Positions 9,718-37,687 of a stretch of DNA of 64,000 nt are shown here, piece by piece. Positions within the stretch are counted from its first letter, which is position 1. Each line of letters begins with the position of its first letter. Below the pieces are notes generated by a model. The model saw nothing but the letters and a program-made list of their open reading frames with translations. It made no database searches and had not been told where the DNA came from. The translations under genes were made by a program, and so were the position numbers. This stretch comes from Marsupella aquatica (Eukaryota > Plantae > Marchantiophyta): NCBI GenBank assembly GCA_973895155.1, contig OZ316899.1, forward strand, positions 3,307,455-3,371,454, read 5' to 3'.

Positions 9718-12700
9718 GAGGATCATCATTTGTGTTTGGAATGGGAAGGACACCTTTAGGTTTCACTAGTAATGTGACTAACACTACTGAATAACCTGGG
9801 GGAATCCTCTTGCCATGGAACGTTGTGGAACCAACCTGCACTCTGCCAAATCCTACTTGTGTTCCACTCTCATCAATAGCTAACAAGCCACTTTGTCCCT
9901 CAGCATTAGGTGCTTTCCCCACTTCCACCTTAGATCTTTCTACCAGCACCATTCTGGGAGGTTTGTATGAAACCTTTGACGTGGCTCTGCTCCCACCAGC
10001 AGACTTGCTTCGTGTGCGCATGTTTCCTCTCTTCACAGTAGTGAAGCTAGGCTCAGTAGGTTCCTCTGTTAGGACTGTCACAGTAGCAGGTTCATCACCT
10101 GGGAGTGTCATACCAACTAACTCTTTGATTGGTTTTATCTCAACAAGAGGCACACCTGTCATTGAGAATGATATATTCTGCAAATAATTTATCTCTGCAA
10201 TGGAGTCAAGATCTACATAGCATGAATCTGGCTCAATGGTATCATTGTCATGCTTGTTGATATCCTCATTTGCCCCAACATTGATATCATCCACTCCCTT
10301 GCCAATGTCATCCTCATCCAAACATGGTTGACTGCCCTCTGTCAAACAAGTTGCTTGTACAGATTGCAACTTTGTTGCCTCTAAATTACAGCGAGTATTT
10401 GCCAGGTTCTCATACTTCTTCTCTGCAGCACCTGTCTTATTCTCTATGGACACAACAACCACAATATATGTTACTGAAAATAACACATTCAACAAACAAT
10501 GTCAATTCAAACTATACATTTACTAATCATATCCCACACAGTTGTAAAGGCCTTACCTTCAAGCCTACATGTCGTTGGCATGCCAGAAGAGTGCATCGAC
10601 TTTGCCATCTCAAGTGGTGATGGTGGAACTCCTGCAGAATTGGAATCAATTTTATCTCTCACCGACACAACAGCTTCCATTAATGTCTGAAGTTCACATG
10701 GAACAAGTCAGTCAATGAATTCAAACGTTCATTGATCTCTGGAAGACATGTTTTGACAGCCTTCAAACGACCACTTATCTCTGTAAGTGAAGATCCACCT
10801 CCCTACATGACACAGGGGTATAGGTTCAATCACTCCATATGAAATGTTGGGCAATATATGCACAATCAATGTTATATACAGTGTACACCTGAAATTCAAC
10901 GCAGGTCATTCAATTACCAATCAGAACTCATATAACTTACATGATTGGAGGATTCAGATGCACCCTCTTGAGCCCGGGTGTTCACAATTTCAGCCCTCAA
11001 CTCTTCTTTTGAAGGGCTTTGCCCCATTGGCTTTTTGCACATGCATGGCAAACACAAGTTATCATTATTATTCAGGGAACGTACACTAAAAAACAAAGTT
11101 TACATGTATGGGTTTACACTAAAAAACAGTACATAGTGTAGCATAAATTACATAGCTAGGCCATTGATTCTTACCAAACGTTTTGCTGTCGGTGTAGTGC
11201 CAGTCCTTCCTGTCAGATTAGGGTTCTGAACCCTCAACCTGGCCTTGGTCATCTGTGAACTCTTCTTTTTTGAAGCATCTGTTACAAAATAAGCTACTAA
11301 CCTTGCCCACACTTTATCATCACAACTGGCTGGTGGAGGCATATATGGCTTCTCCCCACCTTCCTTCCAAGCCTTATGCATTCTCCACCTCTCTTGCTTT
11401 ATGATTTTACCTGCTGTACTCTCTAGGCAACCTATGTCCATGCCATCATCACTGCCCACATAATTCCATTTGGCAGCAACATTTTCACATACAGTCTTCC
11501 AATCTTTTGGATGTTGTTTTTTAAAATTAATAACATTCACATCTAACCAACGCAATACTTCAGCTTTCAAATCAGCATGCCATTGGTTCTTACAAGGACA
11601 CTCAGCATCCACCCATTGTCTCTCATTCAACTTTACATTCCCTTTCTTTGTCATGTCCCCTCGTGCACTGCTCTCGGTAGTACTGGGCGTTGTATTGGCC
11701 ACCCCTTCATTCACCCTACCTGGGGTTCTGAAGCCACTTGGGAAAATACAATGCCATTCATGCTTGAGTGTGTGTGCAAACATATGTACTGAAAACTAAG
11801 TACAAACTATAGGAAAACATATGAACATTCACCAACATACCTGGCCCCCTTCTGTGCTGCATCTGCATAGGGGCATTAGTGAATACTTGAGTTGATGGTT
11901 TGACTGTCCAACCTGCACACATACATTTTCTATTATTATACATGTGCAGAATCCCCCCCACGTCAATGGACTCCACATATAATGAGTTCTTCCATTGCTG
12001 ACAAGATCAGACATTACCTGCCCCTCTTCCAGCATTTGTAGGTACTGTATTTTGAAATCCCTGCCAATTAGCTTCACCACCTTCCCAACCTTGTTCATTC
12101 CACGACCCACCACCATCCTCCCAACCTGGTTCAACCCATGTCTGTCCTTGTGGACATTGGAACTGATCATTACCAACATTTGCCCAATCAGGTTGGGCAG
12201 AATCTGCATGCAATGGCAGGTGGACAGAATTTCATGTTGTCTGAATCCAATACATCCCAAACAATGTCAAAAATTGATATGCAGTCTGAAATTCAGGAGT
12301 GCCATGCCTTCACAAATAACTGGCATATAGATATATACTCACATCTCCATGGTTGAGGTGGACGTCCATACCCACGAGATTGTGGGTTTGGACCTGCTCT
12401 GCCTCTACCACGGGCATAACCTAGAGCTTGCCCCCTGCCATAGTATTGGGCACCAGCCTGGGATCTACCACTACTACCACCTTGCCAACCTTGATCAGAG
12501 GTCAGCCCCCCTGCTGGTATGGTGCATGCACAGGCTTTGCAGGCAAAACAGAACTGGCAGGATGCTGCATCACATCACCAACTACAATGTCAGGAACTAA
12601 GCAAGGTACATAGGGTGTAGTACTGAACATATGAAACCTCCCAACAAGAGTTTTTAACTCTAAACCTTGTTGGGAAAACTACTTACCTGTTTCTTTTGGG

Positions 12701-14488: not shown

Positions 14489-16810
14489 TTATTCCTGATT
14501 ATAGTATTGCTTCAATCGATCATGGTGCACTCTAGTAGGGAACACCTCTCCTTCAAGAGTAGCAAGCTGAATTGACCCATTAGCATAAACCTGGTGAACA
14601 ACATAAGGACCCAACCATCGAGTATGCAACTTGCCTGGAAAATGAGCATACCTACTATCATAGAGTAATACCAACTGTCCAGCAAGTAAAGAAGTCGGCT
14701 TCTTCAACTTCTTGTCATGATGTTGCTTCACTTGAGCTTGCTTCTTCTTCACTTGCTTACTTGCTTCTTCCCGGATTTCTTTCAACTCCTCCAGCTGGTA
14801 AGCTCTCTCCATCAAACTCTGGTCAGCCTCCATTCTCTCCTCCACACTCACCCTCAAAGTAGGCACTTCAAACTCAACAGGTACAAGTGAGTGTTGTCCA
14901 AATACTAGGTAGAAAGGACTATGGCCGGTTGTGGTCTTGAAAGCAAGGTTGTAGGAGTACACAGCTGAGTATAATTTGTCATCCCAATCAGTCTTGTGTG
15001 CCGCCACAGTTTTGTTCAAGATCTTGCCAATGATGCCATTAGCTCTCTCCGTTAATCCATTTGCCTTGGGGTGATAGGGAGTGGTCTTCCTATGCTTAAT
15101 CAAGTACTGAGTAGTGAGCTCCTCCATGACCTCATTCAAGAAGTGAGTCCCCCTATCACTAACCAATTCGAGAGGTGGCCCAAATCTGGTAAAAATCTGC
15201 TGATACTGTGAGAGCATTGTCCTTGCTACTGTGAGAGCATTGTCCTTGCTTGTTGGTCTTGCCTCTACCCACTTAGTAGCATAATCAGTTGCAAGAAGGA
15301 TGTATCGATTCCTTCTAGACCTGGTCACAGGAGTGATGGGACCTATGAAATCTATACCCCATTTCTCAAAAGGTGCAAGAGGTAAAATGGTGGTAAGAGG
15401 GTGATGCCTGGAGTGAGCTGGTTTACCTGTCCTTTGGCAAGGGTCACATCCCCTCACAAAAAGACTTACATCCTTATGAAGTGTTGGCCACCAATACCCT
15501 GCATCAAGGATCTTCCTTGCTGTTGTTGCACTTGCATAATGGCCACCAGCCTCCTCCTCATGCATAGCTCTCATCACAATGGAGATTTCCTTCTTCTCCA
15601 AACACCTCCTTAGTCTCCCATCAACTCCTTCCTTGTGAAGGACACCCTTCACCAATAAATAGGGTCTGACTTTTTGCAAGAAAACAGCAGCCTCCTCTTG
15701 ACTCAAATCTCTTGGTAGCCGGGTTGTGAGAAGAAATTGGATGATATCCAAGTACCATGTATCCCCTCCACTTTCCACATGAAAGAGGTCTTCATCTGGA
15801 AACTGATCATCCACCTCCTTCAAGTCCTCTTCTCCTTCAATCCTTGAGAAGAAGTCTGCATTCCCATGCTTCTTACCAGGCCTGACCCTCACCTCATAAT
15901 CAAACTCTTGGAGCAACAAGATCCACCTTGCCACTCTACCCGTTACATCAGGTTTATTCACCATATACTTGAGAGCATTGTGATCAGTATGGAAGACCAC
16001 CTTATAGCCCAACAAGTAGTGCCTAAACTTCTTACAAGAGTAGATGATGCCTAGAGCTTCTCTATCGGTTGGTGAGTAATTCTTTTCAGCAGGTGCTAAA
16101 AGTCTACTTGCAAAATAGATAGGGTGATCCTTATTCTGGTCATCAAGTTGACTGAGCACCACACCAATACAAAAACCAGACACATCCACATACACATGGA
16201 ATTCGCTACTCCAATCAGGTGCTATCAAGATAGGAGCTTCAACCAACCTGTTCTTCAACTCCTGGAAACTTGCTAGCCTCTCAACTGAGGGTTCGACCTC
16301 AGCCCCCTTCTTAAGCATGCTGGTTAGGGGTAAAGCTACTTTAGCAAAGTCCTTAATGAACCTTCTATAGTAGTTTAAACATCCCAAGAATCCCCACAAC
16401 TCTGTTATTGAAGTTGGAAATTGGACAGCCATCCAAACAGCCACCTTTTCTTGATCCACCTTGTGACCAAGTAGTATCCCTTCTTCCACACCAAAGAAGC
16501 ACTTCCCTGGGTGAAGCTTCAAACCAACTTCCCTACATCTTTGGAAGGTCATCCTCAAATGTTCAACATGGTCCTTCCTCCTTCCAAAAACAGCAAAGTC
16601 ATCTATGAATACTTCCAAGAACTTTCTCAAGTAGTCATGAAAGATATTCATCATCAACCTTTGGAACATACCAGGGGCATTACAAAGACCAAAAGGCATC
16701 CTCCGAAAGGCATAAATCCCCCACTCAGTAGTAAAGGCTGTCTTCAACTGGTCCTCCTTCCTTATCCAAATCTGGTTGTAACCTGAGTACCCATCTAGGA
16801 AGCTATACAC
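14489..16810 (-). pseudogene. pol: pol: RT, RNase H, integrase
   Basis: FLDGYSGYNQI, FIDD, YVDVSG, WGIDFIGP, SDRGTHF, GKLHTRWLGPY; separated from the upstream ORF by one in-frame TAG (16814-16816). Confidence 0.97.
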
Positions 16811-16813
16811 TTC

Positions 16814-19335
16814 CTAACCAGCTACTAAATCAAGTACCATATCAGTAAAGGGGATGGGATAGTGGTCCTTCTTAGTGGCCTCATTGAGTTTCCTAAAGTC
16901 TTGGCAAACTCGGATCTTAGGCTTACCATCCAAGCCTGGTTTCTTTGGTACAATGACAATTGGGGAAACCCACTCACTATTCAACACAGGATAGATGAAA
17001 CCTGCTTCCAACAATTTGTCTATCTCTTCTTTCACCATCAAGGAGTACTTGGGATTCATTCTATATTGCCTTTGTCTCACAGGTGAAGCTCCTAGCATCA
17101 AGTCAATTCTATGCTCACCAAGTTCAGGGTTTACACCAGTAAGATCCAAATGACTCCAAGCAAACACATCCACATATTCACCTAGCAAATCTTGGATAGT
17201 TTTCTCTTCACCTGATCCCAAGGCATTTCCCAAGTTGAAGGTCTTGTCTTGCTGGACAGAGATGGTTCTGTACTGCTCAGCTCGAATCACCTCCATCTTG
17301 TTCCTCATTGTGGAGTCAAAAGCGTCTTCAAGTTGTGCCAATCTCATGCCTCCATAGACTGGTGCATTTTCAGCACTTAACTCCTCCTTCTCCTTGCTTG
17401 AATGCTGGTCTTCCTGAGTCTCATCCTCCTCTAAGTTTGCAGCCTCCAATTGGTCCTCCAGCTCCTTTATCTTGAGCTTCAACAATGCCAGGTGTTTAGC
17501 CTTCACCCTCTGGTCATGAGTCCCCTTCTTGATCTCAACTTGGGTAGCACCCTTGCTGGTCTGATCAGCCTCCTGAGCCACTATGATAGTGCCTTCTTTG
17601 TTGTTCTCCTTGGATGAGGTGGCAGCCGGCTTCACCTCCTCTAGACTGGTCACTTCACTGATATTGGGCAGAGGTGAATGGTTGGGAAGAGCCTCTTGCT
17701 CTTGCTCCTCTCCAAACACTTCTTCTTCAGTCCATTGGCTCACCATGTTCAACATGTATACCTCATCCTCATCAGATGCAAATTTGGTACTCAACTCATC
17801 GGAAAGTTCAGAATCATATTCATCCAACTCATCAGTAGTCTCTCCTTGATGCTTGTCATGACCCCATGAAACTGAAGTGGTAGGTTTGCCAAATCTAAAC
17901 TCCTTCTTGCCCCAATCAGTTACCACTTGGGCTCCATACAACCAAGGCCTTCCAATCAAGATTGGGTAAGTAGAGGGCCTTGCTGGTCTCATCACCAAGT
18001 AATTCAACAATAACTCCTGCCCCCCAATGAGAGTAGGTACTTGAGTGAGAGTCCCCACCGGTAGTACTCTTGCTCCATTTGCTAGTCTCATTGTCCTTGC
18101 TGTTGGCTGAAGTTTCTTGAAACCTAGTTGTTGGGCAGTAGCCTCAATCATGATATTCACACCTGAGCCTCCATCAACTGGTACATACAAGAGTACACAC
18201 CCATTCACTTGAACATCAATCTCAGGTGCTCCAAGGTCTTCACAAACCATCATCACATCAGCTGGGGTCCCAACCTTTGGAAGCTTCCTCCTTCTCCTTC
18301 CTACCAACATCTCCTTCAGTTGCCTCCTATACAAAGGGTTGTCTTTGATCAGCTGCCCCACTGTAGCAGTAACCAAACAATCTTTCACATCCTTCTTGAT
18401 GTCATAAGAGGGTACCTTGTTGGTCTCCTTCTTCTCTTCCACCTCAGCTTCTTCGTCCTTCAAAGCTTTAGCAACCTTCAGGTCTTTGTTGATGGTCTCT
18501 TGATGCTCCTTAGCCTCCATCTCCTCTAGTTGCCTCTTGACTTCCTCATTCACCTTGGGATAGAAGAGCTTTGGATGGTCCCTCTTGTAGTCACTATCTT
18601 CAGCTGGTGGGACTTGAACTTCTGCTCCAACTTCAACTTTGGTTGGTGACTCTACTGAGTGCTCCTTTCTTTCCTTCCTCTTCTTCCTCTCTTCTACTCT
18701 TTCCTTCTTTCTTGTGGACCTGGTAGACACCTTGTAACACACAGCTTCCTCCTCAGGTGTCTCCATTCCTGGTAGATCTGGCTGGTACTCCCCACCAGCA
18801 ACTTGTGTCACTCCATCTTTGGTCTCCTCTTGCCATTCCATACTCAATAAGTTCACTGTGGCTTCACTAGGAGCTTTGGCAACCACTGGTTGAGGAGCTT
18901 CCACCCTTCCTACCATCATCTTGGCAGCCGATCCAATAGGACAGTTGGCTGTGGTATGACCCTCTCTTTTGCAAACAGCACAAAGAGGATAGGGAGCTCC
19001 TTGTCCTTGTCTCCTTGGTTCAGGGCAACTATTGGAATAGTGCCCTGGTTTTTGACAATTCCAGCAGATCACCACGGTAGTTCTTGCACTCCCCCAGGTC
19101 CTTGAGGTCCCATTTGATCCACCATTCTTGGTTGAAGACCAGGCATAAGTTGAGGTGCCATGGGTGGAGCTGGTCTTCCTTGCAAAGTTCTTGGGCCTCC
19201 CAAAATCTGGTACACCATCTCTGGGGCTTCTTCATAGAAGTAGTCCACCACTTCACTTGCTTGATAAACTTCACTGGGCTCTTCATTGACATACTGAACT
19301 TGATTCCTCCAACCTTGGCACTCCTGAGGTGTATG
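16814..19335 (-). pseudogene. gag-pol: gag C-terminus (zinc knuckles), protease, RT N-terminus
   Basis: CWNCQKPGHYSNSC, CAVCKREGHTTANC, VPVDGGSGVNIM, EWVSPIVIVPKK; frameshift near 19075. Confidence 0.93.
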
Positions 19336-22993: not shown

Positions 22994-25900
22994 ATGGAGA
23001 AACTTTACTTCCAAGCACTATGCATTGATGGCTCTAATTTCTTGTCTTGGACACTAGATGTCGAGGCCCACCTTGCATCAAGAACCTAGAGGATACAATT
23101 TTGACGGACAATGGCCCCACGCTACAAGAGAAGGCAAAGGCTCTAATCCTGATTCGCCATCATCTTGCTGATTCCTTGAAACGCCAATATATGAATGCAT
23201 ATAATCCTACAGTACTTTGGGATGATCTCCACGCCAGATTTGACCACACCCGCACTATCTTCCTCCTTGCAGCGCGGCATGATTGGATTAACCTATGTGT
23301 ACAGGAATACAAGACGATTGCAGAATACAACAGCGAATTGTTTCGCATCGTTTTGCAATTGGCAATCTGCGGCCACCCGGTTAATGAAGAAGAACAAATT
23401 GAGAAGACCCTTTCGACTTTTCACTCAATGAACCTGGTAATATCCACACAATATCGGAATATGAGATTCACAACATATTCAGAGTTAATCGCGCATATGT
23501 TGTTAGCAGAAAAATATCAGATCTTGCTGCTGCAAAATACAAAGCAACGACCACCCGACACATACCGGGGAGGAAGAGGCCGAGGGAGATCACAACCAGG
23601 CAGATTCCGGAATACCTGGACCCGCAACAACTACAATCCAGATAAGTCCGAGAACCCGCAACTTGTCATAGATGTGGGACTAAAGGACATATTAAGAAAG
23701 CATGTCGAGCCCCAGCACACCTCGTTGCATTATACCAGAAAGATCAAAACAGCTTAGCATATGAAACACATGGAGCATTTTTAGAAACCCCAGAAATATT
23801 ACCTGAATTGCACCTTGCTTTTCAATTCGAGATGTCTAAAGCTTTGGACGACCCAAACTGCTGCATACTAGATAGTGGAACCTCTCACTCGATCTTAAGG
23901 ACCAAAGCTTACTTTAAATACATAATCCCATCGCAAAGAAGAGTGACAACAATCATGGGGCACCACCAGTTGGAAGAGGGGAATGGCCCAGCAAAACTAA
24001 TGCTACCCAAAGGCACAATTAGTCATATCAAGACCGCCATTTACACCCCGAGGGCCACACAAAATCTCCTGAGTTTCAAGGACATTCGTGAGAATGGCCT
24101 GCACATTCACACCAGCATATACGAAACTCAAGAGGTGCTACACATTCTAGCCTAGACCTCACGGGGCATGGAGATCAAAGAAACCCTCATAGCTTTCCCA
24201 CTGGGCTTTTATGCTGTCAGAATACATACCTTCTACACAGATAGCCCCCGACAGACCCTCACTGAGATATGGCACCGCCGATTGGGTCACCCTGGCACAA
24301 AGACTTTCCACAAAATTATTAAAGATACACAGGGCATTCCACATACAGTGCACCCCACTTCATTGAAATCCCCCTGTTTAGCCTGCTCACAAGGCAAACT
24401 TACACTCCGACCATCACCCTCCACAAGGGTATAGCGACGAGACAGGAAACAGGTAAACAATATTTTTTTTCCTGTTTTTAAAATGCTGTTACCAGGAAAA
24501 AATCACTGTTACCAGGAAAAATGACAATTTAAAAATGTCTCCTAAAACATGTTATTTCCCAAAAAAAATAACAATGCAACATTTTTGGCTAGCTTTGGGC
24601 GCTACTATTAGCAGCGCCGGGCGCTAGCAAAAATAACTGGTCGACCGGAAAAAAAAACTTTAAAAATTCAAACAAATTTATTTATTTATTTAAATCAAAA
24701 AAAAAATTCCACCCATTTTCCTGTTACTAGTTTTTTTTCCTGTTACCAGTTTCTGTTATTAAATCCTGTTTCCTGTTTGTTGTCTTTTGTAACCACCTCC
24801 TCCACAACTGACAAGCGCATACCCCAATTTCTTGAGCGAATCCATGCGGACGTCTGTGGCCCTGTAGACCCCCCAGTGGCCCCTTCCCATTCTTCCTCGC
24901 AACAATTGACGCATCATCCAAGTGGTCCCAGGTTCCCCTCCTCTCCACACAAAACTTGGTCTTCCCACGCCTATTAGCACATATCCTCCGTCTGAAATCC
25001 CAGTTCCCTGACCATCCCATCAAAATAATCAGAGTGGACAATGCGGGAGAATTTACATCGAAGACATTCGATGACTTCTGCATAACAGCGGGCATAGAGG
25101 TGGAATACCCAGTCGCCTATGTCCATTTTCAAAATGGAATAGCTGAATCCTTGATTAAACGACTGCAATCTATAGCGAGACCACTACTGATGTAGACAAA
25201 TTTACCATCAACAGCCTGGGGCCATGCCATCCTACATGCAGCAGCATTACTAAGATATCGCCCATCGGCCTTCAACTCGAGCTCCCCACACAAACTAGCA
25301 TTTGGTACCACGCCAAACCTGGCACACCTCCAAACATTCGGATGCCAGGTTCTGGTCCCGATAATGGGACCCAAGCGGACCAAGCTAGGACCTTAAAGAC
25401 AAAAGGGAATTTACATCGGATACGACTCAGCATCAATCATACGATACTTGGAACCTACCACCGCAGATGTATACAAAGCAAGATTTGTGGACTGCCACTT
25501 TTATGAGGATACATTCCCAAGCTTGAGTACAGGAGAGAATAAGACTAACGCCTCAACTAAAGACCTAGCATGGCAAATTAATTCGCAATTCTGGAACGAC
25601 CCAAGAACTGCACAAACCGACACTGAGGTCCAGCGAATACTCCACCTCACTAGAATCATGAAACAATTACCTGATGCATTTGCTGATGTAGCACAGATCA
25701 CCAGGTCCCACATACCTGCTACCAATGCCCCCTCCAGAATCGAAATGGAATGACAAGCTGCTATGACTGCTGAACCGAGGAAGAAGAGAGGACGACCCAT
25801 AGGAGCCGGAGACAAACAACCACGCCAGAGAAGGGTCCCGCCAAATACACAAGCGACATCAGCACCCACGGTACCTGCTATACCTACACCAACAGAAAAC

Positions 25901-26934
25901 GAAGAGATAGCAATTAACTATAATCACACTGGCAACATCTGGGACAGATCTACTGTATTATTGGATAGCATATTTGCATACCAAATCTCACAAGCGATAA
26001 TAGCAGACTTACCTGATCCCATGACCATCAATGAAGCACGCCAACAAAAAGACTGGCCAGAATGGCAAATTGCAATCAACTCTGAACTCGACTCCTTGAT
26101 CTCACGATTGGCCCGATTAAACCAGCTCCGCCGGAAGTTCACCTCACGGGCTACAAATGGACATTCATCAAAAAGAGGAATGCCGAGGGAGCGATTGTGA
26201 GATACAAAGCCAGATTAGTAGCCAGAGGATTCACACAAATCCCAGGCAGAGACTATGACCAAACTTACTCACCGGTCATGGACGTGATAATGTACAAATA
26301 CCTAATAGCATTCGCCATACACCATAAACTTATAATGCATCAACTGGACATAGTGACAGCTTTCCTATACGGTCACCTTGATACTATGATCTATATGGAA
26401 GCCCCTCCTGAACTTATAACCAGAGTAAACTACCACATTGAGGGGGAGAAGGGGCATCCAGACACAAACACTATGAGCGAAGGCCCTTTTGGCCACACAA
26501 ACAAAACAGTGTTATACAACACTGCAAAAGCAATAGGATGGCGAGCTTCTACTAAGCCCAAACTGAATGAGAAAGCACTTCATGCAAGAACTCGTTTCGC
26601 TGTCCAGGTCCTCCGATCCATGTATGGCCTGAAGCAGAGTGGACGCACCTGGTATAAACATTTCAAACATGAGATGTTGGCCATGGGTTTCAAGACATCA
26701 GACATCACCCCCTGCCTATTCATTAAACATGAAGGACATGAAATAATCATTGTGGCCATCTACGTGGACGATCTAAACTTATTTGGCACAAAAAGGATCC
26801 TACATGACACAATTAAACAGCTGAATAGGGTATTTGAAACCATAGATCTAGGCAGAACTGCATTCTGCCTCGGACTGTAGTTCGAACACCTTATGAGTGG
26901 AGTATTCCTCCACCAATCAACTTATACCTGCAGG
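22994..26934 (+). pseudogene. gag-pol: copia gag-protease-integrase-RT, fragmented
   Basis: DGSNFLSWTLDVEAHL and ARHDWINL (Bianca-type gag); ILDSGTSH (PR); WHRRLGHPG...CLAC; RVDNAGEF (INT); YKARLVARGF, GLKQSGR and YVDD (RT). Confidence 0.93.
24427..24799. mobile_element. 373-bp non-autonomous TIR element related to the 26935-37679 transposon
   Basis: 8-bp TSD CTCCACAA (24419-24426 and 24800-24807); ends resemble those of the large element; CTGTTACCAG subterminal repeats; AGCGCCGGGCGCT at 24613. Confidence 0.85.
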
Positions 26935-27684
26935 GGGTATGATAGCCACGACAGAAAACAGAAAACAGAAAACCTGTTACCAGGGGTTTATTTTCTGTTA
27001 ACAGGGAAATTGTACCTGTTACCAATAAGCTTGTCCCTGTTACCAGTTTTGCCTGAACCATAACGTGCATATCCACCACTGTAAGGTGCATATCCACCAC
27101 TCTAATGGCATAATTTTTTGGGGGGCAATAAAGTTTAAAACAAACAATTATTTTGTGCCATCCGATGGATGAAGTGTACTATCAATCCTCCATTGACACA
27201 ACAATTTATTGTAGAAGATAAAAAACATGGTATTAGGAGTGTGCCTAAAGAAACATTCATGCAAATCAATCTATTTTCATCGCCAAATAGTGACCCTTAG
27301 AGTGGGACCCACCATAGCACATGTCAATCGTGGAGTCCAAATGAACCCAATCTAAAGGAGTTGATTAAATGGACCTTGTAACGTCACAAACAAATGACAA
27401 ATCACATCCTCGAGGCTTTGAAGACAGTAGACAATTTAATCAACTTACACATTTTAAATAAAACAAGAGGTCATTCTTCCACAATGCAAGTACATAATGA
27501 AGCAATGAATATCCGGTTTCCTAGAACCAGCGCCCGGCGCTAACCAACAAAGTCTCAATAAAACAACTAAAATATCCGTTGGAAAAAGACAAAATAGGGA
27601 ATAACCGTTATATTGAACGACGACCTATTGGGCAGTTTCGATCTCTCTCATAAGCCATTCAAGTTCTGCCTCTCCAGCACAAGC

Positions 27685-30600
27685 CTAACTTAAAGTCAAA
27701 ATAGGTTGGCTACAAAGAGTCGACTCCTCAATCTCAAGTTTGAAAACATTTATGTACACCCAGTATAGATGTTTGCAAGGCATGTACGACTTGCCACGCG
27801 AATGTCGGAGGAAGAAGTCTTCACAAGAGCAAGCGGGGAAGATACAGATTTGGACGAAGTATGTGCTTGGTGATCGATGGTTCTCATGGGTTCGAATTCG
27901 AAATTGCTTTCCAAAAGCATTTCCGGTCTGAACATTCCATTCCCCATCCAAACTCATCACTTCTTGTCGTGCAGACTCCATTCGCTTCGTGTGACCCACA
28001 GTGAGATTAGACCGAGGCCTTGAGTTCCTCCCATTCCGACTACCAAGTCGGAGATTCGGCTCCAAAAACCTTATTGTTTCTGGGAACACGTTAACATTTA
28101 TCCTGAGGTCAAAAGCAGATGGCGCAGATCGACTCAATCCTGTTGTTCGCGCTAATACAAGTCCTTGCTCTTCCAGGAATGTAATTTTAGAAGGAGACAG
28201 GCTCGTACCCTTCAGAACAGGCAAAATGTCAGGAAAAGGAGGAAGCTTCTGAACACCACGACGCGGATGACTCTTGTAACACGCTTGGTTCGGGCAAAAC
28301 CAAATCATTTCGGAGATGGGTTCGCCCTTGAAGAGACGATGGCCCTTCACGACAATTCCGACAACACCTTCAGACGAATGGAAGCCAACCTTCTTGATAC
28401 GATTTCGACACTCATCGCGATCCGAACTCCCATTCAGTGTACCATTGCATTGCGGACCTGCTCCATACTTCGATGTCCGTCGCAACTGCCACTGCCCCGG
28501 AGGGACATCCTCGTGGAAGTTGATTATGAAGTGTTGCTGGGGCACTGAGCGGAGGTTTTGAGGATCTTGTTGTTCGGGTTGTTTGAGGAGTATAGTCCAG
28601 TGAATCAGTATCACTCTCTGATGTGACCATACCTGAGAGATTCACCACCTTTGTGACAGGATGATCAGAACTTGAGGGAATAGAAGAAAAGTCAGTTCTG
28701 TTCAGGTTCTTCCTTTTCAAACCACGAGTATTTGGTGTGGTTATTAGAACGGTGTCATGCCGATGGGAATCTTGTGGAGAGACAGTCCCAGTTGCATGTC
28801 CCTTCCTCTTCATTGACTTCGTCATTATATCTCCATTCAGGGGAGTACTTCTTTCCAAATCGAATTCTGCTGCGTTAGATAGAAGCATATTAGTCGCTTC
28901 TTCAAACAATCTTGGCGAACCTGCTTGATTGGCGGAACGGAACGCCAATTCCCATATAGTTGGCCCCTTCCCCCGGTTCAAGCCTTTACGGTATGCACTG
29001 TATCCGGCAACTTGAGACAGAGCACGGTTTTGGTCAACTTCGCAAGCTTCATAAAGACCGACCTTTTTCTTTGTAGCCGAGGCTTTCATGGACGCATGCC
29101 TTGATTCTGACCCTGTACAGTTGGGGATCAAGGCACCTTCCTCAGCGCTTTTGCTCTGCCATACAAAAATGTCAACCGTAAGTAGTATTCTATTACCAGC
29201 GCCCGGCGCTGGCAACATAAATATGTAGAACAGGCCTGAAATACAATTTCAATGTTTAATACTGAATTCTAACTACATATTGGCTTCAATTTCTTGTACT
29301 ACTTGTTTTGACGTGTATGGAGAAAATAACCAGCGCCTGGCGCTAATATGAAGTTGATGAACATTACAGTCTAGATAGATGGATGCCTTACCACTCGAAT
29401 AAAATTGCCCCACTGGCGCCAGCGAACAACCCACCAAGATATCCAGCTTTGCAGCATCTTCAGCTTTCCGGGGACACAGTTTCCTGATTGCCACCACACA
29501 ACAATCTCTCGGGACACCCGGTATGCTGCCACAAATGATGGAGCATTTCTCAGTTTCTCCCAAAGTCTCCGATGCTCCGATTGACATTCTTCCAGTACTC
29601 CTTCCTTGGAATGACAATGAAAAGATTGATAAAAGTGAAATGCATCAGAGCGCTCCCTCTCCGGGTCCGAGTGTCCACCAAAAAAAACATTTCGCACTGC
29701 ATTCCATCCAGCTTGTGCATTGTCGGCCATAAATCCTTGGATGACAACCTCCTGAAGTTCATTTTCTTTGCAAACCTCAATCATCACTCTCCATGCCTTT
29801 TCGAAGGACTAAGTGTCTTCACCTTTCAACTCGCATGTGAAAATTGTACACAGTGCACGGAAATTGTGGTCGTAGACGTGTGCGCTGAAAGTAAACCAAT
29901 CCGTGGTGACACGCTGCATCACATCAAAACTTACCCAGGCTCCTTCGAGTCTTCCACCCGGTTGCATCTACCTCAAAAGATCCACACCGGAACCATGACC
30001 TTTCACGGTCATTTTAAAGATGTGAGGCCTATCGTTCTGACATCCCTGACCTGGAAGCAAATACCTCTGGAGAAACGACACATGAATCCTCCTCTGCATT
30101 TGTGAGAGAAAATCTAATTCACCTAACGCTCCGACAAAGAGATGCAAACTTTTGCGGAGTGGAAAGGACAATCAGAGACTTCCATATTTTAGTTTCTTCG
30201 ATATCGACCATGTCGTCAACATGTTCGCAGAGAGATTTCACTAAGGACCCTGTAGCAGAATTCAAGATCCCTGCCGGTTTTGACAGAGGATTGGCTTCAT
30301 GTTTTTTTTTAATTAGATCCTCAGCTATCTTCTCCGCACTCCTACAGAAGGTTTTTCTACCTGGATGGTTGTGCTCACCTATATGAATTGCCAGGCGGGA
30401 CATATGACTGCATGTTTCCGCATCAAGTAATACTTGGGGGTACATGTAAAACAAACGGGCAGGGCAGTACTTCACACAAAAAGGAATCTGTTCGCAGTAA
30501 TGACAAACAACACCTCCCTCTTCGATGAAAGATCCCACAGCATACTGACCACTGAGCTTTGGAGTACCCTGCCATGCCTTAGCATTTGCCTTCTTCTTCC

Positions 30601-31156
30601 TTTGGAAATAGTCGCAGGACTTGTTCCTGCATTCAATGAATCCCGTACAGGTAACCTTCCCAAACTGCCAAAGGTTTTTAGGATGAACAGTTGTAGTTGT
30701 TGGAAATATGCGTGTCCAAATGTAACAATCTTTGGCACAATCCATGTCCCTAAGCCTAGAGCCTTTAGAGAGCATCTTATCAATGGGCGGCAACTCAAAC
30801 ACGACGTTACCATTGTACTTAGTTGGCAGACAGGACACTTGTTCATGCTTGAAATGACCCACTGATATGAACCGTGACAACTCACTATGACCAGTTGATT
30901 TGAGTAACGTATCCATCGCACTGCGCCGGTACACGACCTCCAACTGCTTAGAGCTTCCCGGAGTCTCAGCTTTCACGACAGCAGGGAGCGGGCTTTTCTT
31001 CTTCGACGGTGGACTTAGAGTACGATCTCCATCCTCACTTGAAGAAATCTCAACCACATCACATGGAACCGGAGGGAAACTGGACAGTCCTGCAGCTGTC
31101 TTAAACGAACCGAGTACGAGATCCCTGCGTAGAGATGCCAAAACCGTTATTGTCAA
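27685..31156 (-). pseudogene. MULE-type transposase: GCM/WRKY-like zinc finger, DDE core, C-terminal SWIM finger
   Basis: CTGFIEC...CHYC...CPAR...HIGEHNHP; SFDVMQRV, FMADNAQAGWNAVRNVF, AFHFYQS, SESRHAS; CSCEDF...CKHLYWV. A phase-0 GT-AG intron lies at 29156-29391. Stops at 29968 and 29809; frameshifts near 30140 and 28610. Confidence 0.85.
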
Positions 31157-31849
31157 ATTTTAGTAGCGCCTGGCGCTAACTAAAATACGCCACTAAAAAT
31201 GTGTCTGAAATCTCGACATTCCAAACTAGCGCCCGACGCTAGTATAGAATAAATTCCCTTAAAATGAACATTATGACCACATACCAGGTGGTAATTGGGA
31301 ATAAATGGTGCCTTCAAAGGATGGTTTTGATTGATTATGGATGATAAATGAACATTTATACTAGCGTCGGGCGCTAGTATTACATTTGAGAAATATTTCT
31401 CCGTAAACGATGTACTGAAGGATACTTTAATAAAATATGGGGGTGAAAAGGCCGAAATTTATGTCATAGCTCCTTCAAAAAAGACCTCTAAATTTCTTCC
31501 AGTTTATACTAGCGCCGGGCGCTATTATAAGCATACTCTAAATTGTTCACCTTGATGGTCATCATTAATGCTAGCGCCCGGCGCTAGTATTGATATGATG
31601 TTAGGAAATGTCTTTAACGGTAACATTCAACGGTAACTTATGACTTCCGTGTGTGTTACGCATCTTCTACCGTTTGATTTTGGTAATTAAACCTTCCGTA
31701 TACAGACGTTGGAAACCGCCAAACATCAGAGCTAATGGCTTTCCTCTAGGTTATGTCATCCTCCCGCTAGAATATATTACACGTTCAGAGATGATTATAG
31801 TTCCATAATTTCATTGTACGATAGTTCGTACGCTTCTAGAAGGAAGACG

Positions 31850-34800
31850 ATGGAGGTATTCCCCTCTTCTTCCAGAGGGTATAGTGTGGTTCCTGACCAG
31901 GAGCGAGCTTATTCTGAATCTTCGCAGTCTTCGTTTACTGGTTCAGTCTATACACGTCGTGTAACTCGTTCCTCAAAGTTGTTGCCGCTCACTTCTGTCA
32001 GCGGTGTTTTGGGTCCAAATCCTTTGCAAAGAAAGATGGACAACGTAGACATAATTGCGATCCAGGATGTTGCGGATTGCGCGCTTGCTGAGACTGATCT
32101 CATTTCGAAGCATGTCATGTCTTTTGGAAAGGATTCTCGTGGATTTGACAAGGAGCCACCTTGAATCCCTCTGTGTCGATTGGTTCACATGGAGGTGGTT
32201 CGTACTCTGCAGAAAGACAGCTCTTCCATCGAGAAGCTGAAAGACTCTTTTCGTAGTATGGGTTACAACTCTTCGATAGGGATGCGTTTCTATGTGCAGC
32301 CAACGGATGAGAACGGAATTGTTCTGACCTGTACCCAGGACATTCGTGATTCATGGGATCCAATATGGCAATTGGAGAACAAGAAGTTTGAGGCTGAATG
32401 CGAGGCTGACCCGGATTTTCTCGTCTTGAAGGATAAGATGTTCTCTGTATTCGATGGAAATCACAGGCTGTACTCCTGGACGCTTGTAACAGAGGAGAAC
32501 CCGGACAATCCAAAATATCATCCTCGTGTGCTCTGTACAATATTTAAAGGAGACAAGGGATCTCTCATTGAAATTGAGGCAGCTATGCACACCGTGAATC
32601 AGTAAGTTCTCATGATTTCCAGTTCTTTCTTTAAATCTTGCGAGTGCTGTATTTACTAGCGCTCGGCGCTGCTTATACATGAATTGTTTTTCATTGACTC
32701 TTACTCTCAACGTTTGTTCGTGTAGGCTTGGCCAAGCAGTTGTAGAGCCTTCCTGGATCCTGGATGCGGACAGAATCAAACGAATTCTGGCGCATGACCT
32801 TGAGTATTACAGTAAACTGATTGACCCGGGTAATTTCAAGAAGTTTGAAAGCATTCGGCTGAAAACTCGGAAGGGGTCATGGTATACGAAGAAGATGCCA
32901 CAAGAAGCACTTGTTTACATTCTTTGTGAGAATAAGATAAAGTCGTACTCGCATCAATTCAAACTCGACATGGAGGCAGCGGAGGCTCAAGGGAGTCCAT
33001 GGTCGGCGGACGAGATTTCAAAACGGCATGCGGCCATGATGAAAGACGCAACCAAAGATTGGGCAGTGAAGTCTTCAAAAATTACGCCCTTATTAAGTCA
33101 TGAATTTGAAGATTTCCTCAGTACATGTGCAGAAATGTATGCTATCACAGAGAGAAACAAGAGAGAGAAGAAGCCTGACACCGTTGTATGTACGATGGAC
33201 CGCGCACGATTGTTCACCGCTGTTTCTGCTCTAGACCCAAAGTTACGAAGCACTTTACTTGTGGCACATTGCAATCCTGAGCTGCGGAGACAGTTTTTTC
33301 ACCCAGCAAGTGTTAACGATGATCCAGTCAAACAGTGGTGCCACACTTGGATCACTTGGAATAGTGTGGAGGGAATTGCTGCTGGCATGTTACATTCATG
33401 TCTACGTGAAGTTGAGCAAACCATGCCCGCGAATAGATTGGAAGAGTGGAATTGTAGTTCGTTTGATGATCTAGTTCAGTTTGTTACAAATGAATTCAAG
33501 AGATTTGGTGATTCCGTGAAGAATAAGTTCTTTCACACTATGTGGCCTTCAAAGTACCCTGACAAAGAAGATTACACCCAGAGAAACCAGAAGCGAGCGA
33601 AGAGGTTTGTGTATAGGTTCTACATGCACATGGAGGTAACCAAACCTAATTACTTCTGGGCATATCCTGCAGCTTTTATGAAGTGGATTTCAATAAGTGA
33701 AGATGATGCCTTGGCTGATTTGTACTCTATGTACCCCACGGAGGGCATATTTCCTCTGAGACCAATGACAGAATGGGAGAGAACTCACTGCCCCTGGTAT
33801 CTAGATACAGATAGATGGGATTCTCCTTTTGATCAAAGGGAAAAAGATGCCTTCCATAAGCTTTCAAAGTCTCAGATACCAGCAAAACTTGTGTCCGACA
33901 TGAAGCAGGGTCTACTTGACGATGTAGACAAGTCTGCCACAAACTTGCAAACTATCTGTGAAACAACTGTTGTGCATGTGGACCGGAGTCGCAAACCTCG
34001 CGCGAAAGCCAAAGCGGAGCTAGCAGCACCGAGCGAGTCTACTAAATCTGGAAAGAAGAGTAAGTATTGCTATCCATGATTTTGCCAGCGCCAGGCACTG
34101 GCAAAAAATATTCTGTTGAGGGTATTCTCTTTCTTGGTTATTAGGCTTCGGTTGCGACTTAAGTGAATTGCATTTGGTTAGCGCCAGGCGCTAGCTTCTT
34201 TCAATACTTTAAAAGTACTTATTCTAACTACGACCTGGTTATATTTTAGGAGGGAGGAAGTCTAATACGGTGGGAACGGGAGATACTAAAAAGGATGCTA
34301 CACCTGAAGTTTCCGAGGCAAACACGGGAGCTCGATCGGACCCCATTACTCCAGTCGACAAAGGGAAGGTTATAGTTCCTATCGACGCCACGAGTACCAG
34401 GAAGAAACGAAAGAGAGCTGTCGAAGGTGGACAATCTTTAAGGGAGAGTGTTATAGCTTCTGGTTTCCAACGTGAAGTTGGAAACTTCAAAACAACTGTG
34501 TCTCGCCATCGCATGGTTGAGACAAGCCTTTCTGAATTTTTTGACTCGACGTTCAACAAGGAGGAGAAGCCCGAGTGGGTTAGTGATGTGGAGAAATGGG
34601 GAAAAGACCTCGTTAAGTTGGGATTTAAAGAGAAGGGAGTTGTTCGGGGGGGAAAAGTAAGATCGTTTGGAGTGGATGCCGGCTTCATTTACCTACCGAC
34701 CGGGTTCAAACCATCTATCATTGATAAGAAGGTTCCTAAATGGAACATTCCAGATCACTCAATGGCGAGATCTTTTTTCAAATCCATGGATCCATTTTTA

Positions 34801-35460
34801 TCAGATGATGGGTTCCTTGTAATTCTACACAATGGGGAGTACGATCCCATGTCGCAAGTCATTGCTGCCTGTCAGGAGTCAAGGAAATTTCAGTGTATAT
34901 GCTCGCATAATGTTGTGATGTCTGACCCGATGTATGCGGCAAAGACAAACCAAGAGATGTTTACCCTCAGGCTCGACATATTTGGCGGAATTAATGGGAA
35001 ATGTAAAATTCCCAAAGACCCCAAATTTCGGCCGCTGTCCATCAGTGAGGACCCTTCGGTTACCAATTTGATCGGACTCTCTTCGCTCAAATCAAATCCA
35101 TTCCCGCAAATGGAGTTTGCTGGAAATGCTCATCTGTCTGTGGGTTTTATGCAATCTGTTATAGAGCTTGTCACACGGCCTCGTGATATTTTTATGGATT
35201 GGACTGCTGGGGTTGGAGGCTCTTACATTGCTGGCGACTTCTCTGGATGATTTGTACTCGGGATAGAACACCGGAAAGAATTTATTGAAACCGCTTCAAA
35301 GGTTTTCATGGATTTGTTGTCTCCCAAAGAGATTGCAGTGTTACCTCCACCTGTTCCTACTGCCGACAGAAAAAAGAGAGATAAGCTTCGGTCGGTTCTC
35401 AATTTTGATTCTGATGATGAATCGAGTGAAGGTGGAGAGGAACAAGGTACAAGAAACTGA
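31850..35460 (+). pseudogene. spliced ParB-like domain + helical region + beta-class DNA methyltransferase-fold fusion gene
   Basis: IPLCRLV...VRTL...KLKDSF...GY...VFDGNHRLYSW (ParB-like); introns 32602-32725 and 34060-34249 keep the frame; VDAGFIYLPT...FFKSMDPFLSDDGFLVIL...IELVTRPRDIFMDWTAGVGG...G*FVLGIE (MTase fold); in-frame TGA at 32162 and 35248. Confidence 0.8.
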
Positions 35461-35587
35461 GGAGGAAAAGGGAGAGCGTCGTGCAGCTGCAGATGAAACC
35501 GATAGGGATGACTCTTCCGAGTAATGTTCATAAACTCGTAAGCTTCTTTCTCCATTCCCGTCAATTCATAATATTTCTTTTGTTGTT

Positions 35588-35938
35588 TTGGGGAAAGGTG
35601 CCTTACAAAATGGACTTTGTTATATCAGGTCAGAGTGGAATGCAAGGAGACGATTCAAACTGCGGAGGAAGATCGCGAGACACAACGTAGAAACACCGGA
35701 AAAACCGTTTGTTCTTCCCTCCTATGCAGAGAAAGCCGCAAGGAAAGCAGAAAGTGCAAGGACACTTTGCTGGGAAAACAAAGGTCTTCGGTTACGAAGG
35801 GGTGTTGACCGAAAGTTCATTAAACATCCTTATGTTGATGACTTCTCCCGCAGCCAGTACGTAGATGATGAGGCTGTGTCCACGGACAGATTCCAGAGTA
35901 CAGATTCTGGTTCCGACTCAGAATCTTCGGAACCGTGA
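35588..35938 (+). CDS. small orphan ORF or exon inside the MULE
   Basis: ORF track only; basic N-half and acidic Ser-rich tail; no recognised motif. Confidence 0.25.
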   Translation: MGKGALQNGLCYIRSEWNARRRFKLRRKIARHNVETPEKPFVLPSYAEKAARKAESARTLCWENKGLRLRRGVDRKFIKHPYVDDFSRSQYVDDEAVSTDRFQSTDSGSDSESSEP

Positions 35939-36428
35939 GAAGTAGTGGGTAGTTGAGGCTAAATCTTTTAGCAGCGCCCGGCGCTTGTAACAAGTGTATT
36001 ATTTCCCTCTGCTGAGGGTCCTTTGAAATTGTTGATTTCTCTCTACTTGTTGATTACTTTTGACTTCTGTTCTTTACAAGCGCCTGGCGCTCGCCAAATG
36101 GAATCTCTAAATGGCCGTTTAGTCAGTCGTCGGAAAACCGTTGGGGACCATAGTTTAGGGACCGGGCGGAAGGGACGACTATAGTTTCCGTTTAGGTTTG
36201 TTCGGGACGACGAGAGTTGGGGACGTCGATAGTTGAGGACGATGATAGTTTCGGGAAGACGATAGAACGGGACGTTAGAGTAGGGCGAGAGAACGGGACG
36301 ATACCTATTACCAAGGCGAAGATAGTTTCGGGAGGCAATAGAATGGGACGATGATAGTTTGATGGTCGTTTCGGAATGGTAGTGTACGCGGACCTTTATC
36401 TGGCGTCTTAGTCTTCGCGGACCTTTCT

Positions 36429-36971
36429 TTGACCTTTGTCGGCTATAGCACTCGCGGACGACGTTCTTACGGGAGGAGAGGTTACATATTAGATCGGGAT
36501 CTTTGGAACATGGCGAGTCAGTATGAGCCAATGGATTGGGAGGCAGCTTTTCGTCCTTCTCGTGTGCATCCAGAAGAGAGCCATTTCAGCTCTTTTGAAT
36601 CGCGGATGGAGACTGAAGAAACTGAAACTTCCACTTTTCGGAACCGTCATGCTCTCCCATATGATGAGGCTATTAGTCCTGGAGAGAAGAACATCCCTTG
36701 GATTGTTGATTCCCCTACGCCTCCGTTCTCTAGTCGGTTTTCGTCTCACTCGGGAGTTCTTGTTGATGGGGTACTCCCAATCGATCGAAGAGTACAAGAA
36801 ATGTTCGGGCGAGTTGATTTTAAGGACAGTAATATTCCTAATGAACATTTTACGAGGGCTGTTCGTCAAGGACCTTCAGAGAGATACGTTCGTTTGCGTG
36901 GTCTCGGCTTCAAGAAAGATCGGCGGAGAGAAGCAGCAGGAGTGGATGATGATTGCAACTCAGAAAGCTAG
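36429..36971 (+). CDS. small orphan ORF inside the MULE
   Basis: 180-codon open frame with an ATG at MASQYEP; no recognised motif. Confidence 0.3.
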   Translation: MTFVGYSTRGRRSYGRRGYILDRDLWNMASQYEPMDWEAAFRPSRVHPEESHFSSFESRMETEETETSTFRNRHALPYDEAISPGEKNIPWIVDSPTPPFSSRFSSHSGVLVDGVLPIDRRVQEMFGRVDFKDSNIPNEHFTRAVRQGPSERYVRLRGLGFKKDRRREAAGVDDDCNSES

Positions 36972-37687
36972 ATGGAAATTTCGTTTTGCTGATCGCTTAA
37001 GCTAGCGCCGGGCGCTGCTAAAGTTTTCCGGATTTTGTGGCATTGAAGTCGACCTCAGCTCTGGTGTTAGGGTTTTCCCGGTTGTCTACTATTTAGGTTT
37101 TGGCTAGCGCCGGGCGCTATTGAAACGACAACGGATTTTGTGGGAGGGAATGGATCTTGACTATGTTGTCTGGGTTTGGATGCATCTTGTCTCCAAGAAA
37201 CGACTAGTTTTCTAGTTAGTTTTTGGCTAGCGCCGAGCGCTGTTCATGTATTAGTCGAAAACCTCCGACGGTGTCGACCGTGACTTCATGGATGGGATTT
37301 TTAGGCCAGATTGTTGATGTTGATAACTGCATTTTGTATCACTTAAGCCGAGCGCGTTTTCTATTTTGCGATAATATATGCGAATGTTTTTTCCGGCCTT
37401 TCTTTTCTACTTGTATTTGTCTTGGATTTTGTGTATCTCAATTGGCAGCCGTCTTTTATGTTTCAAAAAATTGTTCCCGTGTTGTTCTTTTATTTATCAC
37501 GAGGGTTTGGTGGTTTTGTTTTCTATTCTTGTACTTTCAAATGGAGATTTTGAGACCTTTTTTTAAGATCACTGTTCACGACCATCCAAACACTGTTCAC
37601 TGGTAACAGCTCCTTTTAACTGGTACCAGAATCTGTTTCCTGTTACTGTTATCTGTTTGCTGTCGTTTGTAAATTCCCCCCTGCAGG

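Follow-up and report, generated by a model that had tools for sequence, protein, structure and literature searches.

A decayed DNA transposon of the liverwort Marsupella aquatica carries a gene for a ParB-like and methyltransferase-fold fusion protein

The window analysed here comprises 64,000 nucleotides of the liverwort Marsupella aquatica (contig OZ316899.1, positions 3,307,455 to 3,371,454, assembly GCA_973895155.1). Positions 26927–37687 are best read as a decayed, non-autonomous DNA transposon of about 10.8 kb. Its plus-strand gene, which starts at 31850, would encode an element-specific accessory factor that recognises the palindromes of its own element; we give this reading a probability of roughly 60%. 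The predicted protein combines a ParB-like N-terminal part with a C-terminal part of DNA-methyltransferase (MTase) fold. The reading starts from what was observed: the structure of the gene, the folds and motif states of its product, a high copy number, a linked transposase-like gene and lineage-specific palindromes.

The plus-strand gene, its element and its palindromes

Four open reading frame (ORF) pieces lie on the plus strand at 31814–32164, 32180–32605, 32679–34079 and 34270–35250. They join into one frame once two GT-AG introns are removed; the frames were checked by hand. A first-pass annotation, made from the sequence alone, had described these pieces, both introns and two in-frame TGAs, and all were found in place. 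The motifs it had listed were also located: IPLCRL..., DGNHRL, VDAGFIYLPT, FFKSMDPFLSDDGFLVILH and ..DIFMDWTAGVGG.., the last at 35182–35220.

Exon 1 (31850–32601) begins with the first ATG at 31850 and a low-complexity leader, followed by an in-frame TGA (32162–32164) and a ParB/sulfiredoxin (Srx)-like domain (32165–32599) with the DGNHRL box at 32453–32470. Intron 1 (32602–32725, GT..AG, phase 2) contains one palindrome at 32658. At its junction, the final 'ca' of exon 1 and the 'g' at 32726 form CAG and the reading ..VNQ/LGQ... The intron position is kept in Calypogeia, and homologous ORFs stop at the same ..MHxxN(K/Q) boundary. Exon 2 (32726–34059) encodes a conserved middle region of about 445 amino acids that matches no recognisable family. 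Intron 2 (34060–34249, GT..AG, phase 1) contains two palindromes (34087 and 34180). Exon 3 (34250–35446) encodes a Lys-rich linker and then a beta-class N6/N4-MTase-fold domain, with YLPT at the motif IV position (34690–34701) and motif I at 35182–35220. An in-frame TGA at 35248–35250 replaces the conserved Arg of a G-R-x-x-I-G-x-E block.

The first-pass annotation had ended the gene at 35460. Coding likely continues to 35938 through a third intron and a tail exon. The putative intron 3 (35447–35633, with GT at 35447 and AG at 35632–35633) is predicted from frame arithmetic and the homology of the next exon. Exon 4 (35634–35938) encodes a conserved tail, LPSYAE ... VDD.A ..., with an acidic and Ser-rich end and a stop codon at 35936–35938. 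The underlying ORF (35588–35938) is homologous to DNA downstream of the MTase part in Calypogeia and metagenome loci. Exon 4 matches positions 11171–11467 of the Calypogeia locus and 5146–5367 of a metagenome contig, and its tail motif aligns with the C-termini of P0053, P0057 and P0084 from Riccia and P0069 from Ceratodon. The four exons total 3585 nt, or 1195 codons, an exact multiple of three.

The window was compared with six other loci: Calypogeia (L001), Riccia (L002), Ceratodon (L003), a Logan contig (L004), a metagenome contig (L005) and L006. The gene parts are collinear in L001, L002, L004, L005 and L006. The only full-length annotated relative, P0084 of Riccia sorocarpa, is a single gene model of 1191 amino acids with the same parts. 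A product that is one spliced fusion of a ParB-like and an MTase-fold part, as proposed in the first pass, is supported because the same collinear parts occur in Calypogeia, in Riccia (the single 1191-residue model), in a moss and in metagenome contigs.

The gene lies between inverted ends. The left arm (26927–26971) opens with CCTGCAGG and pairs with the right arm (37643–37687); both arms are 45 nt long and 78% complementary. The octamer CCTGCAGG, itself a palindrome, is present at both element ends and could represent either a target duplication of 8 bp or a portion of the inverted repeat. A degraded transposase-like gene (MULE-like) with several exons is located on the minus strand at 27829–31078. 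It is separated from the plus-strand gene by a divergent intergenic region (31157–31849), and a 3' non-coding part follows the plus-strand gene at 35973–37241. The transposase-like gene shares 35–53% amino acid identity with the two large ORFs that lie on the minus strand upstream of the homologue in Calypogeia. Riccia has the same divergent pairing, with transposase-like proteins matching at E 4e-114, and so does Ceratodon, with a transposase-like fragment about 7.7 kb upstream in L003.

The region 31500–35800 was recovered from four sequencing runs as 74–1020 Logan contig pieces per run at 90–99% identity, with summed word depths of hundreds to tens of thousands. These runs behave like DNA, with contigs that cross introns 1 and 2 unspliced, and the sequence is a multi-copy repeat. 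The gene is transposon-borne, as the first-pass annotation had it: it belongs to a high-copy repeat, sits between inverted ends and, in four lineages, has a divergent transposase-like gene linked to it.

The palindrome AGCGCC-N-GGCGCT has 17 copies in the window against 0.02 expected, all of them within 24613–37241. Sixteen are inside the element and all of these are non-coding: two in a transposase intron, five in the divergent promoter region (31165, 31228, 31363, 31511 and 31573), those of intron 1 (one) and intron 2 (two), five downstream (35973, 36079, 37004, 37106 and 37229) and one far left. Palindromes were counted de novo in the related loci; where an expected number was computed, it was about 0.02. 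Five of these have each their own dominant palindrome in the same kinds of places, namely introns, divergent promoter region and subterminal DNA. Calypogeia L001 has ATTG-y-TAGCGAGCTCGCTA-r-CAAT (23 copies with up to 2 mismatches) and Riccia L002 has CCGGCGGA-S-TCCGCCG, with the core GGCGGA-N-TCCGCC (12 copies). The Logan contig L004 has CTGTCGGATCCGACAG (5 copies), the metagenome contig L005 has ATTACTAACGA-yr-TCGTTAGTAAT, with the core TAACGA-NN-TCGTTA (19 copies, in every intron), and L006 has TAGCGCCGGCGCTA (3 copies). A locus-specific palindrome of 12–24 bp thus fills introns and flanks in six of the seven loci. The L005 palindrome has frequently lost its central CpG by decay to TG/CA.

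The methyltransferase-fold and ParB-like domains

None of the window pieces matched Pfam; sub-threshold TRAPP and ClpS assignments are noise. Separately, a resemblance to the fungal DUF3723 was noted. Homologues were collected with a word-indexed search using one piece (D), which gave P0001 and P0002, the latter from Calypogeia fissa, and then with an exhaustive HMMER search, which gave 95 representatives. All named homologues among the matches are bryophytes: the liverworts Riccia sorocarpa and Calypogeia fissa and the moss Ceratodon purpureus. The remaining representatives come from metagenomes or Logan assemblies. Homologues score 15.7–27.6 bits with Pfam PF01555, for which the cut-off is 26.7, and P0054 alone passes (27.6). 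Several relatives match PF01555 across the motif X-I region; P0059 does so over profile positions 2–212 of 221.

A family profile for comparison with the PDB was built from 49 sequences. It matches CcrM (6pbd) with E 9.4e-10 over profile positions 95–310 and CcrM residues 33–262, from motif IV through motif I, and the alignment opens with 'aDlifialPtGl' against 'VDLIFADPPYNL'. The next profile matches are DpnA/M1.HpyAVI (1e-8), TTHA0409, the rotifer N4CMT (3e-3) and M.MboIIA. The intact Calypogeia domain was modelled with AlphaFold2, with the window as a row in the alignment; the model reached a predicted local distance difference test (pLDDT) score of 92 and a predicted template modelling (TM) score of 0.89. 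Beta-class N6A/N4C DNA methyltransferases make up all of the top 43 matches of this model in a Foldseek search of the PDB (best E 1.4e-12, TM 0.62), and the matching AlphaFold DB clusters are all DNA methylases. Profile and model together assign the C-terminal part to the beta-class N6/N4 DNA-methyltransferase fold. The permuted motif order, IV-VIII ... X-I, is of the beta-class type; the first-pass annotation had recognised it, and the CcrM alignment and the Foldseek matches bear it out.

'Trimethylguanosine synthase' and 'Ribosomal protein S2' are among the automatic UniRef names for the Riccia sorocarpa proteins P0054, P0067, P0053, P0101 and P0089, almost certainly as misannotations of the transposon protein.

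For the N-terminal part, a family alignment of 14 sequences has near-invariant D-G-N-H-R, W-D..W and H-P-R-V blocks and a common exon end. The Foldseek list for the model of this part consists almost purely of sulfiredoxin, ParB, Noc, KorB, PadC and SbnI. VIA-align superimposed the model on residues 47–139 of Caulobacter ParB (7bm8) with Z 7.8 and a root-mean-square deviation of 2.5 Å over 92 residues. In a scan of 48,161 chains that was independent of Foldseek, only 17 chains reached Z 2. The top 12 are all of ParB/Srx/DndB/GmrSD type, with Z from 7.0 to 2.7, in the order KorB (7.0), PadC, Srx, Atu1540, SerK, pNOB8 ParB, SbnI, BrxU, SspE, Spo0J ... DndB-type; the best unrelated chain of the scan has Z 2.6. 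AlphaFold DB clusters for this part are ParB or DGQHR proteins, and language-model neighbours agree. One cluster, A0A388MEC1, is a 'DNA methylase N-4/N-6 domain-containing protein' of 1005 amino acids with a ParB-like fold at residues 324–452. Judged by its accession prefix, it may be from Chara braunii, which would put the fusion in streptophyte algae too.

The G-x-x-R phosphate-binding box reads GERR in ParB, GCHR in Srx and DGQHR in DndB-like proteins. The structural alignment and this established pattern suggest that DGNHR is equivalent to the phosphate-binding box of ParB. The modelled N-terminal part probably belongs to the ParB/sulfiredoxin superfamily. Canonical partition ParB proteins have, after this N-domain, a helix-turn-helix domain that binds parS, and further a C-terminal domain for dimerisation, a ParA partner and CTP-dependent clamping.

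The middle region has 47% identity to P0003 over 100% of the query and is collinear in five loci, among them L001, L002, L005 and L006.

Candidate function of the fusion protein

The transposon lineage would be common to liverworts and mosses and carry two divergent genes, a MULE-like transposase gene (minus strand) and the ParB-MTase gene (plus strand). The protein would consist of a ParB/sulfiredoxin-fold N-domain, about 445 amino acids of unassigned fold, a beta-class MTase-fold domain and a short conserved acidic tail. As an element-specific DNA-binding accessory factor, it would recognise the palindromes of 12–24 bp that lie in all non-coding segments, that is in promoter region, introns and subterminal parts. 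Binding may occur as a dimer and possibly as an NTP-dependent, ParB-like clamp. The protein would then act in cis on the chromatin or DNA of the element by shielding, marking or anti-silencing, with the MTase fold as a SAM-binding or DNA-reading module and not as a base-amino methylase. Analogues of such a mechanism would be the loading of ParB at parS and the VANC proteins of VANDAL MULEs.

As a less probable extension, this can be widened to a bryophyte-wide self-recognition of the ParB/parS kind. The protein would load onto family-specific palindromes of 16–24 bp spread over each non-coding part of its element, with the introns among them. Protein and palindromes would co-evolve and serve element-specific protection from silencing or self-marking, as a convergent counterpart of VANC and VANDAL, with the MTase fold turned from an enzyme into a DNA reader or a switch that depends on SAM. 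A prokaryotic origin followed by intron gain is plausible.

We infer that it is the ParB-MTase protein that attaches to the palindromes and exerts its effect there, and not the transposase or a host factor. The placement of the palindromes is conserved and their sequence turns over, which would be the look of a cis-site co-evolving with a binding protein encoded by the element. The binder could also be the transposase, which likewise uses repeated subterminal sites. The palindromes would then be unrelated to the ParB-MTase protein and represent cis sites of the transposase or of something else, or targets of host factors or small RNAs. The protein would act elsewhere, for example as a ParB-like NTPase or a nuclease helper in transposition. 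DNA transposons commonly bear repeated subterminal transposase sites, and proteins of the ParB/Srx fold include nucleases and kinases, as among the matches Atu1540, SerK and SbnI. Ceratodon L003 retains both the gene and the transposase-like gene, and the palindrome count found no array there. The sites, however, are not restricted to the neighbourhood of the ends but also occupy all introns and the promoter region of both genes, which is unusual for transposase sites, and the sequence changes between lineages while the placement relative to the ParB-MTase gene is kept. Dimeric ParB-type proteins bind palindromes of 16–24 bp, and red-algal ParB-like accessory genes also adjoin inverted-repeat arrays (bioRxiv 10.1101/2025.02.11.637652). 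Of the alternatives, this one survives best, and we consider it unlikely.

Motif IV bears on the question of catalysis. In known enzymes, the aromatic residue at its position 4 stacks on the flipped base. The canonical (D/S/N)PP(Y/F/W) is present in none of 60 representatives, and the consensus is x-L-P-T-G; the inspection of the family did not recover the catalytic motif. Position 1 is D (17), Y (12), A (12), F (8), S (5) or C (3), position 2 is L in 42 and position 3 is P in 57 representatives. At position 4, all residues are T, S, N or E, and no representative has an aromatic one. One DPPT member comes closest to the canonical motif. YLPT, which the first-pass annotation had noted as one base from DLPT, is also found in P0001 and P0008, FLPN occurs in Calypogeia and DAPE in Ceratodon L003. 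By this comparison, YLPT in the window is no one-base slip of this copy but characterises its whole subfamily. The motif IV position is followed by a new conserved block, V-P-x-W-N-x-W-D. Motif I, in contrast to motif IV, is conserved across the family: G-D-[IV]-V-x-D-W-x-x-G-x-G is kept in about 48 of 51 representatives, with D in 47–48, D in 47, G in 38 and G in 48 of the 51 at its key positions. It is present in the window, where the Arg codon ten residues on is TGA.

Canonical amino-methyltransferase activity is predicted to be unlikely because (D/S/N)PP(Y/F/W) is absent from all 60 representatives. Most likely, the MTase-like domain would bind S-adenosylmethionine (SAM), DNA or both without canonical base-amino methylation. 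The first pass had left a divergent enzyme and a non-catalytic reader side by side, and the latter is the better reading. A domain that is an active N6-methyladenine or N4-methylcytosine (6mA/4mC) methyltransferase with an unorthodox motif IV, with the palindromes as its sites and an element that methylates itself, is rather improbable. The strong constraint on motif I and the G-R..IG.E block across mosses and liverworts suggests that SAM is still used. The palindrome cores resemble type II sites (GAGCTC, GGATCC, GACGTC and GCGC-containing ones), some members have Asp at position 1 and one has DPPT, and the published reading of a related Ectocarpus protein is an N4C/N6A MTase (PMC12477816). 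Against this stand the complete lack of the canonical motif and of an aromatic position 4, and the free variation of position 1, which is expected of a residue that is no longer catalytic. Moreover, the known Marchantia 4mC enzyme, DN4MT1, to which a link was considered, retains TSPPY (bioRxiv 10.1101/2021.02.12.428880).

Several results weigh against the accessory-factor reading, among them the array-free Ceratodon locus and the possible binding by the transposase. Loss of DPPY is no proof of the loss of all catalysis, the strongly conserved motif I could mean an enzyme with another substrate, and 17 of the 60 members keep Asp at position 1 of motif IV, and one member reads DPPT. For the ParB-like part, PDB searches with the piece alone and with the family profile gave nothing relevant (a CagT match with E 0.3 is chance), and none of the 14 family members has a Pfam match to ParB (PF02195). 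AlphaFold2 gave one confident model of five for the N-terminal part (pLDDT 76, the other four about 45), and the Foldseek matches of this model are not significant (E of at least 0.15). Both folds had been proposed in the first pass: the MTase is borne out by profile and structure, the ParB part by structure and not by sequence profile. The middle region has no match in the PDB profile search or in Pfam, and no DNA-binding helix-turn-helix was identified. The splice joints 32601/32726 and 34059/34250 were not seen in the Logan contigs, which are DNA-like with unspliced introns.

That the pieces are chance ORFs or separate genes in series within a decayed repeat is very improbable: the stop codons of the window copy, the DNA-like contigs in which splicing is not visible, and the division of the Calypogeia and metagenome loci into several genes by gene callers fit such a view, but order and frame-compatible junctions are kept at 25–47% amino acid identity in six other loci, intron 1 is conserved in position, the exons sum to an exact multiple of three and Riccia has a single annotated protein.

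Decay, surroundings and known systems

Both in-frame TGAs are CpG-to-TpG changes from Arg codons and private to the window copy. Such changes are the usual decay of methylated repeats. Position 32162 is C (CGA, Arg) in every other contig of the repeat family in three runs, and relatives have Arg at this site (PPRIPLCRL in P0104, P0108, P0111 and P0112). The second site is Arg in P0002 (GDFCGRHVIG) and belongs to the G-R-x-x-I-G-x-E block, which is conserved in the gene family and in real methylases. The C-to-T origin from CGA proposed in the first pass is thus confirmed. The transposase-like gene of the window copy has in-frame TAGs at 29968–29970 and 29809–29811, within blocks conserved with Calypogeia. 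The window copy is non-autonomous and both of its genes are dead. Stop-codon read-through or selenocysteine was considered and rejected: other copies read C at 32162, conserved or common Arg residues stand opposite both sites in the alignments, and the same copy has a broken transposase as well.

The first-pass annotation had called the element a plant MULE. Language-model neighbours of the transposase-like protein are all PF10551 MULE (score 0.93), and a D-N-A-x-A-G-W-x-A-V-R-x-V-F ... F-H block resembles the second-Asp region of MULEs. Protein and profile have no Pfam match even at E 10 and none in the PDB. 'MULE-like' is a reasonable label and a lead rather than a demonstrated assignment, drawn from language-model features and one motif resemblance.

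Among the palindromes of the element's 3' part there is an ORF of 180 amino acids (36429–36971). Neither Pfam nor the related loci gave a match to it, and it may not be a gene. No ParA-like gene was found in the element by the ORF scan. Upstream of the element, the fragment 24483–24634 contains one palindrome (24613) and a 33-nt stretch that is inverted relative to 37600–37632; it is probably what remains of another family copy. Long terminal repeat (LTR) retrotransposons surround the element at 1242–4715, 14489–19075 and 23047–26880. Two pol ORFs are of gypsy type (RVT_1, RNase H, integrase), and a copia-type gag/RVT_2 remnant stops immediately to the left of the element. In Ceratodon purpureus L003 (CM026436.1, 18134482–18159335), a leucine-rich repeat receptor-kinase gene adjoins the ParB-MTase gene; this locus could be a decayed or domesticated copy.

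To our knowledge, few transposon accessory proteins recognise the element that encodes them, and VANC of VANDAL is the main studied case; the ParB-MTase cargo genes of algal giant transposons came to notice very recently and have no function known to us. The first pass had assumed a higher novelty than the literature allows. Accessory proteins with ParB and N4/N6-MTase parts are published for the 21.5-kb Sola1-1 family of Ectocarpus, where a 1104-amino-acid protein with a ParB-like and an N4C/N6A MTase part lies opposite the transposase (Dinatale et al. 2025, PMC12477816). The Sola1-1_Ec32 protein was proposed to bind and modify its own element (PMC12477816). Related ParB/MTase genes were reported in transposons of red and green algae (PMC12477816; bioRxiv 10.1101/2025.02.11.637652). 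The bryophyte gene agrees with Ectocarpus Sola1 in a protein of about 1,100 amino acids with a ParB-like N-part and an N6_N4-type MTase C-part, encoded opposite to the transposase inside a DNA transposon. Compared by description only, it differs in the bryophyte host, the MULE-like transposase, the family-wide loss of the catalytic tetrapeptide and the family-specific palindromes.

In red algae, PAG2 combines PF01555 with SET and PAG3 combines a ParB-like domain with a 2-oxoglutarate (2OG) oxygenase, on Plavaka, Mutator and Zisupton elements (Petroll et al., bioRxiv 10.1101/2025.02.11.637652). Inverted-repeat arrays adjoin PAG3, and its ParB assignment has an HHpred E of 0.29 (bioRxiv 10.1101/2025.02.11.637652). 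The same two domain types thus occur on DNA transposons, with inverted-repeat arrays beside the ParB-like gene and equally weak ParB sequence support. Unlike in red algae, where they are separate proteins, the domains are fused in the bryophyte protein, which is without SET or 2OG. A survey of eukaryotic adenine methylases described ParB-linked clades in chlorophytes, chytrids and haptophytes and did not include the bryophyte family (Iyer et al., PMC4738411).

Fold and motif order are those of the beta-class MTases CcrM, M1.HpyAVI/DpnA, M.RsrI and M.PvuII. Phage ParB_N-N6_N4_Mtase fusions (clusters with PF02195 and PF01555) likewise have ParB first and the MTase second. Unlike these prokaryotic and phage enzymes, with which it shares 13–18% identity, the bryophyte protein has no DPPY/SPPY and has an insert of about 445 amino acids, introns and the context of a eukaryotic transposon. 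METTL14 offers a parallel in another clade: its active-site motifs are disrupted (PMC4738411). As in such pseudo-methyltransferases (EPPL in METTL14), the MTase fold is kept and motif IV is degenerate; in METTL14 it is a nucleic-acid-binding scaffold. METTL14, however, belongs to the MT-A70 clade and works with an active partner. VANC proteins are the anti-silencing proteins of Arabidopsis VANDAL MULEs. They may be the closest functional analogy, as accessory proteins of MULEs with short, family-differing motifs in their own non-coding DNA. There is no homology; VANC has neither a ParB nor an MTase fold, and its motifs are not palindromes.

The kind of protein is already known. What is new is the host range in land plants, the partnership with a MULE-like transposase, the loss of motif IV throughout the family and the systematic turnover of the palindromes across lineages. 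The class is extended to land plants, that is to liverworts and mosses, and to a MULE-like transposase. Bryophyte proteins of this type should not be annotated as active 'DNA methylase N-4/N-6' or 'trimethylguanosine synthase', as some Riccia members are by automatic naming. In their lineage, the MTase fold has no canonical catalytic motif and still keeps the SAM site. In six of the seven loci, the gene is accompanied by a palindrome that is specific to its lineage and restricted to non-coding DNA, and this pairing leads to a concrete and directly testable hypothesis of how these elements may recognise themselves.

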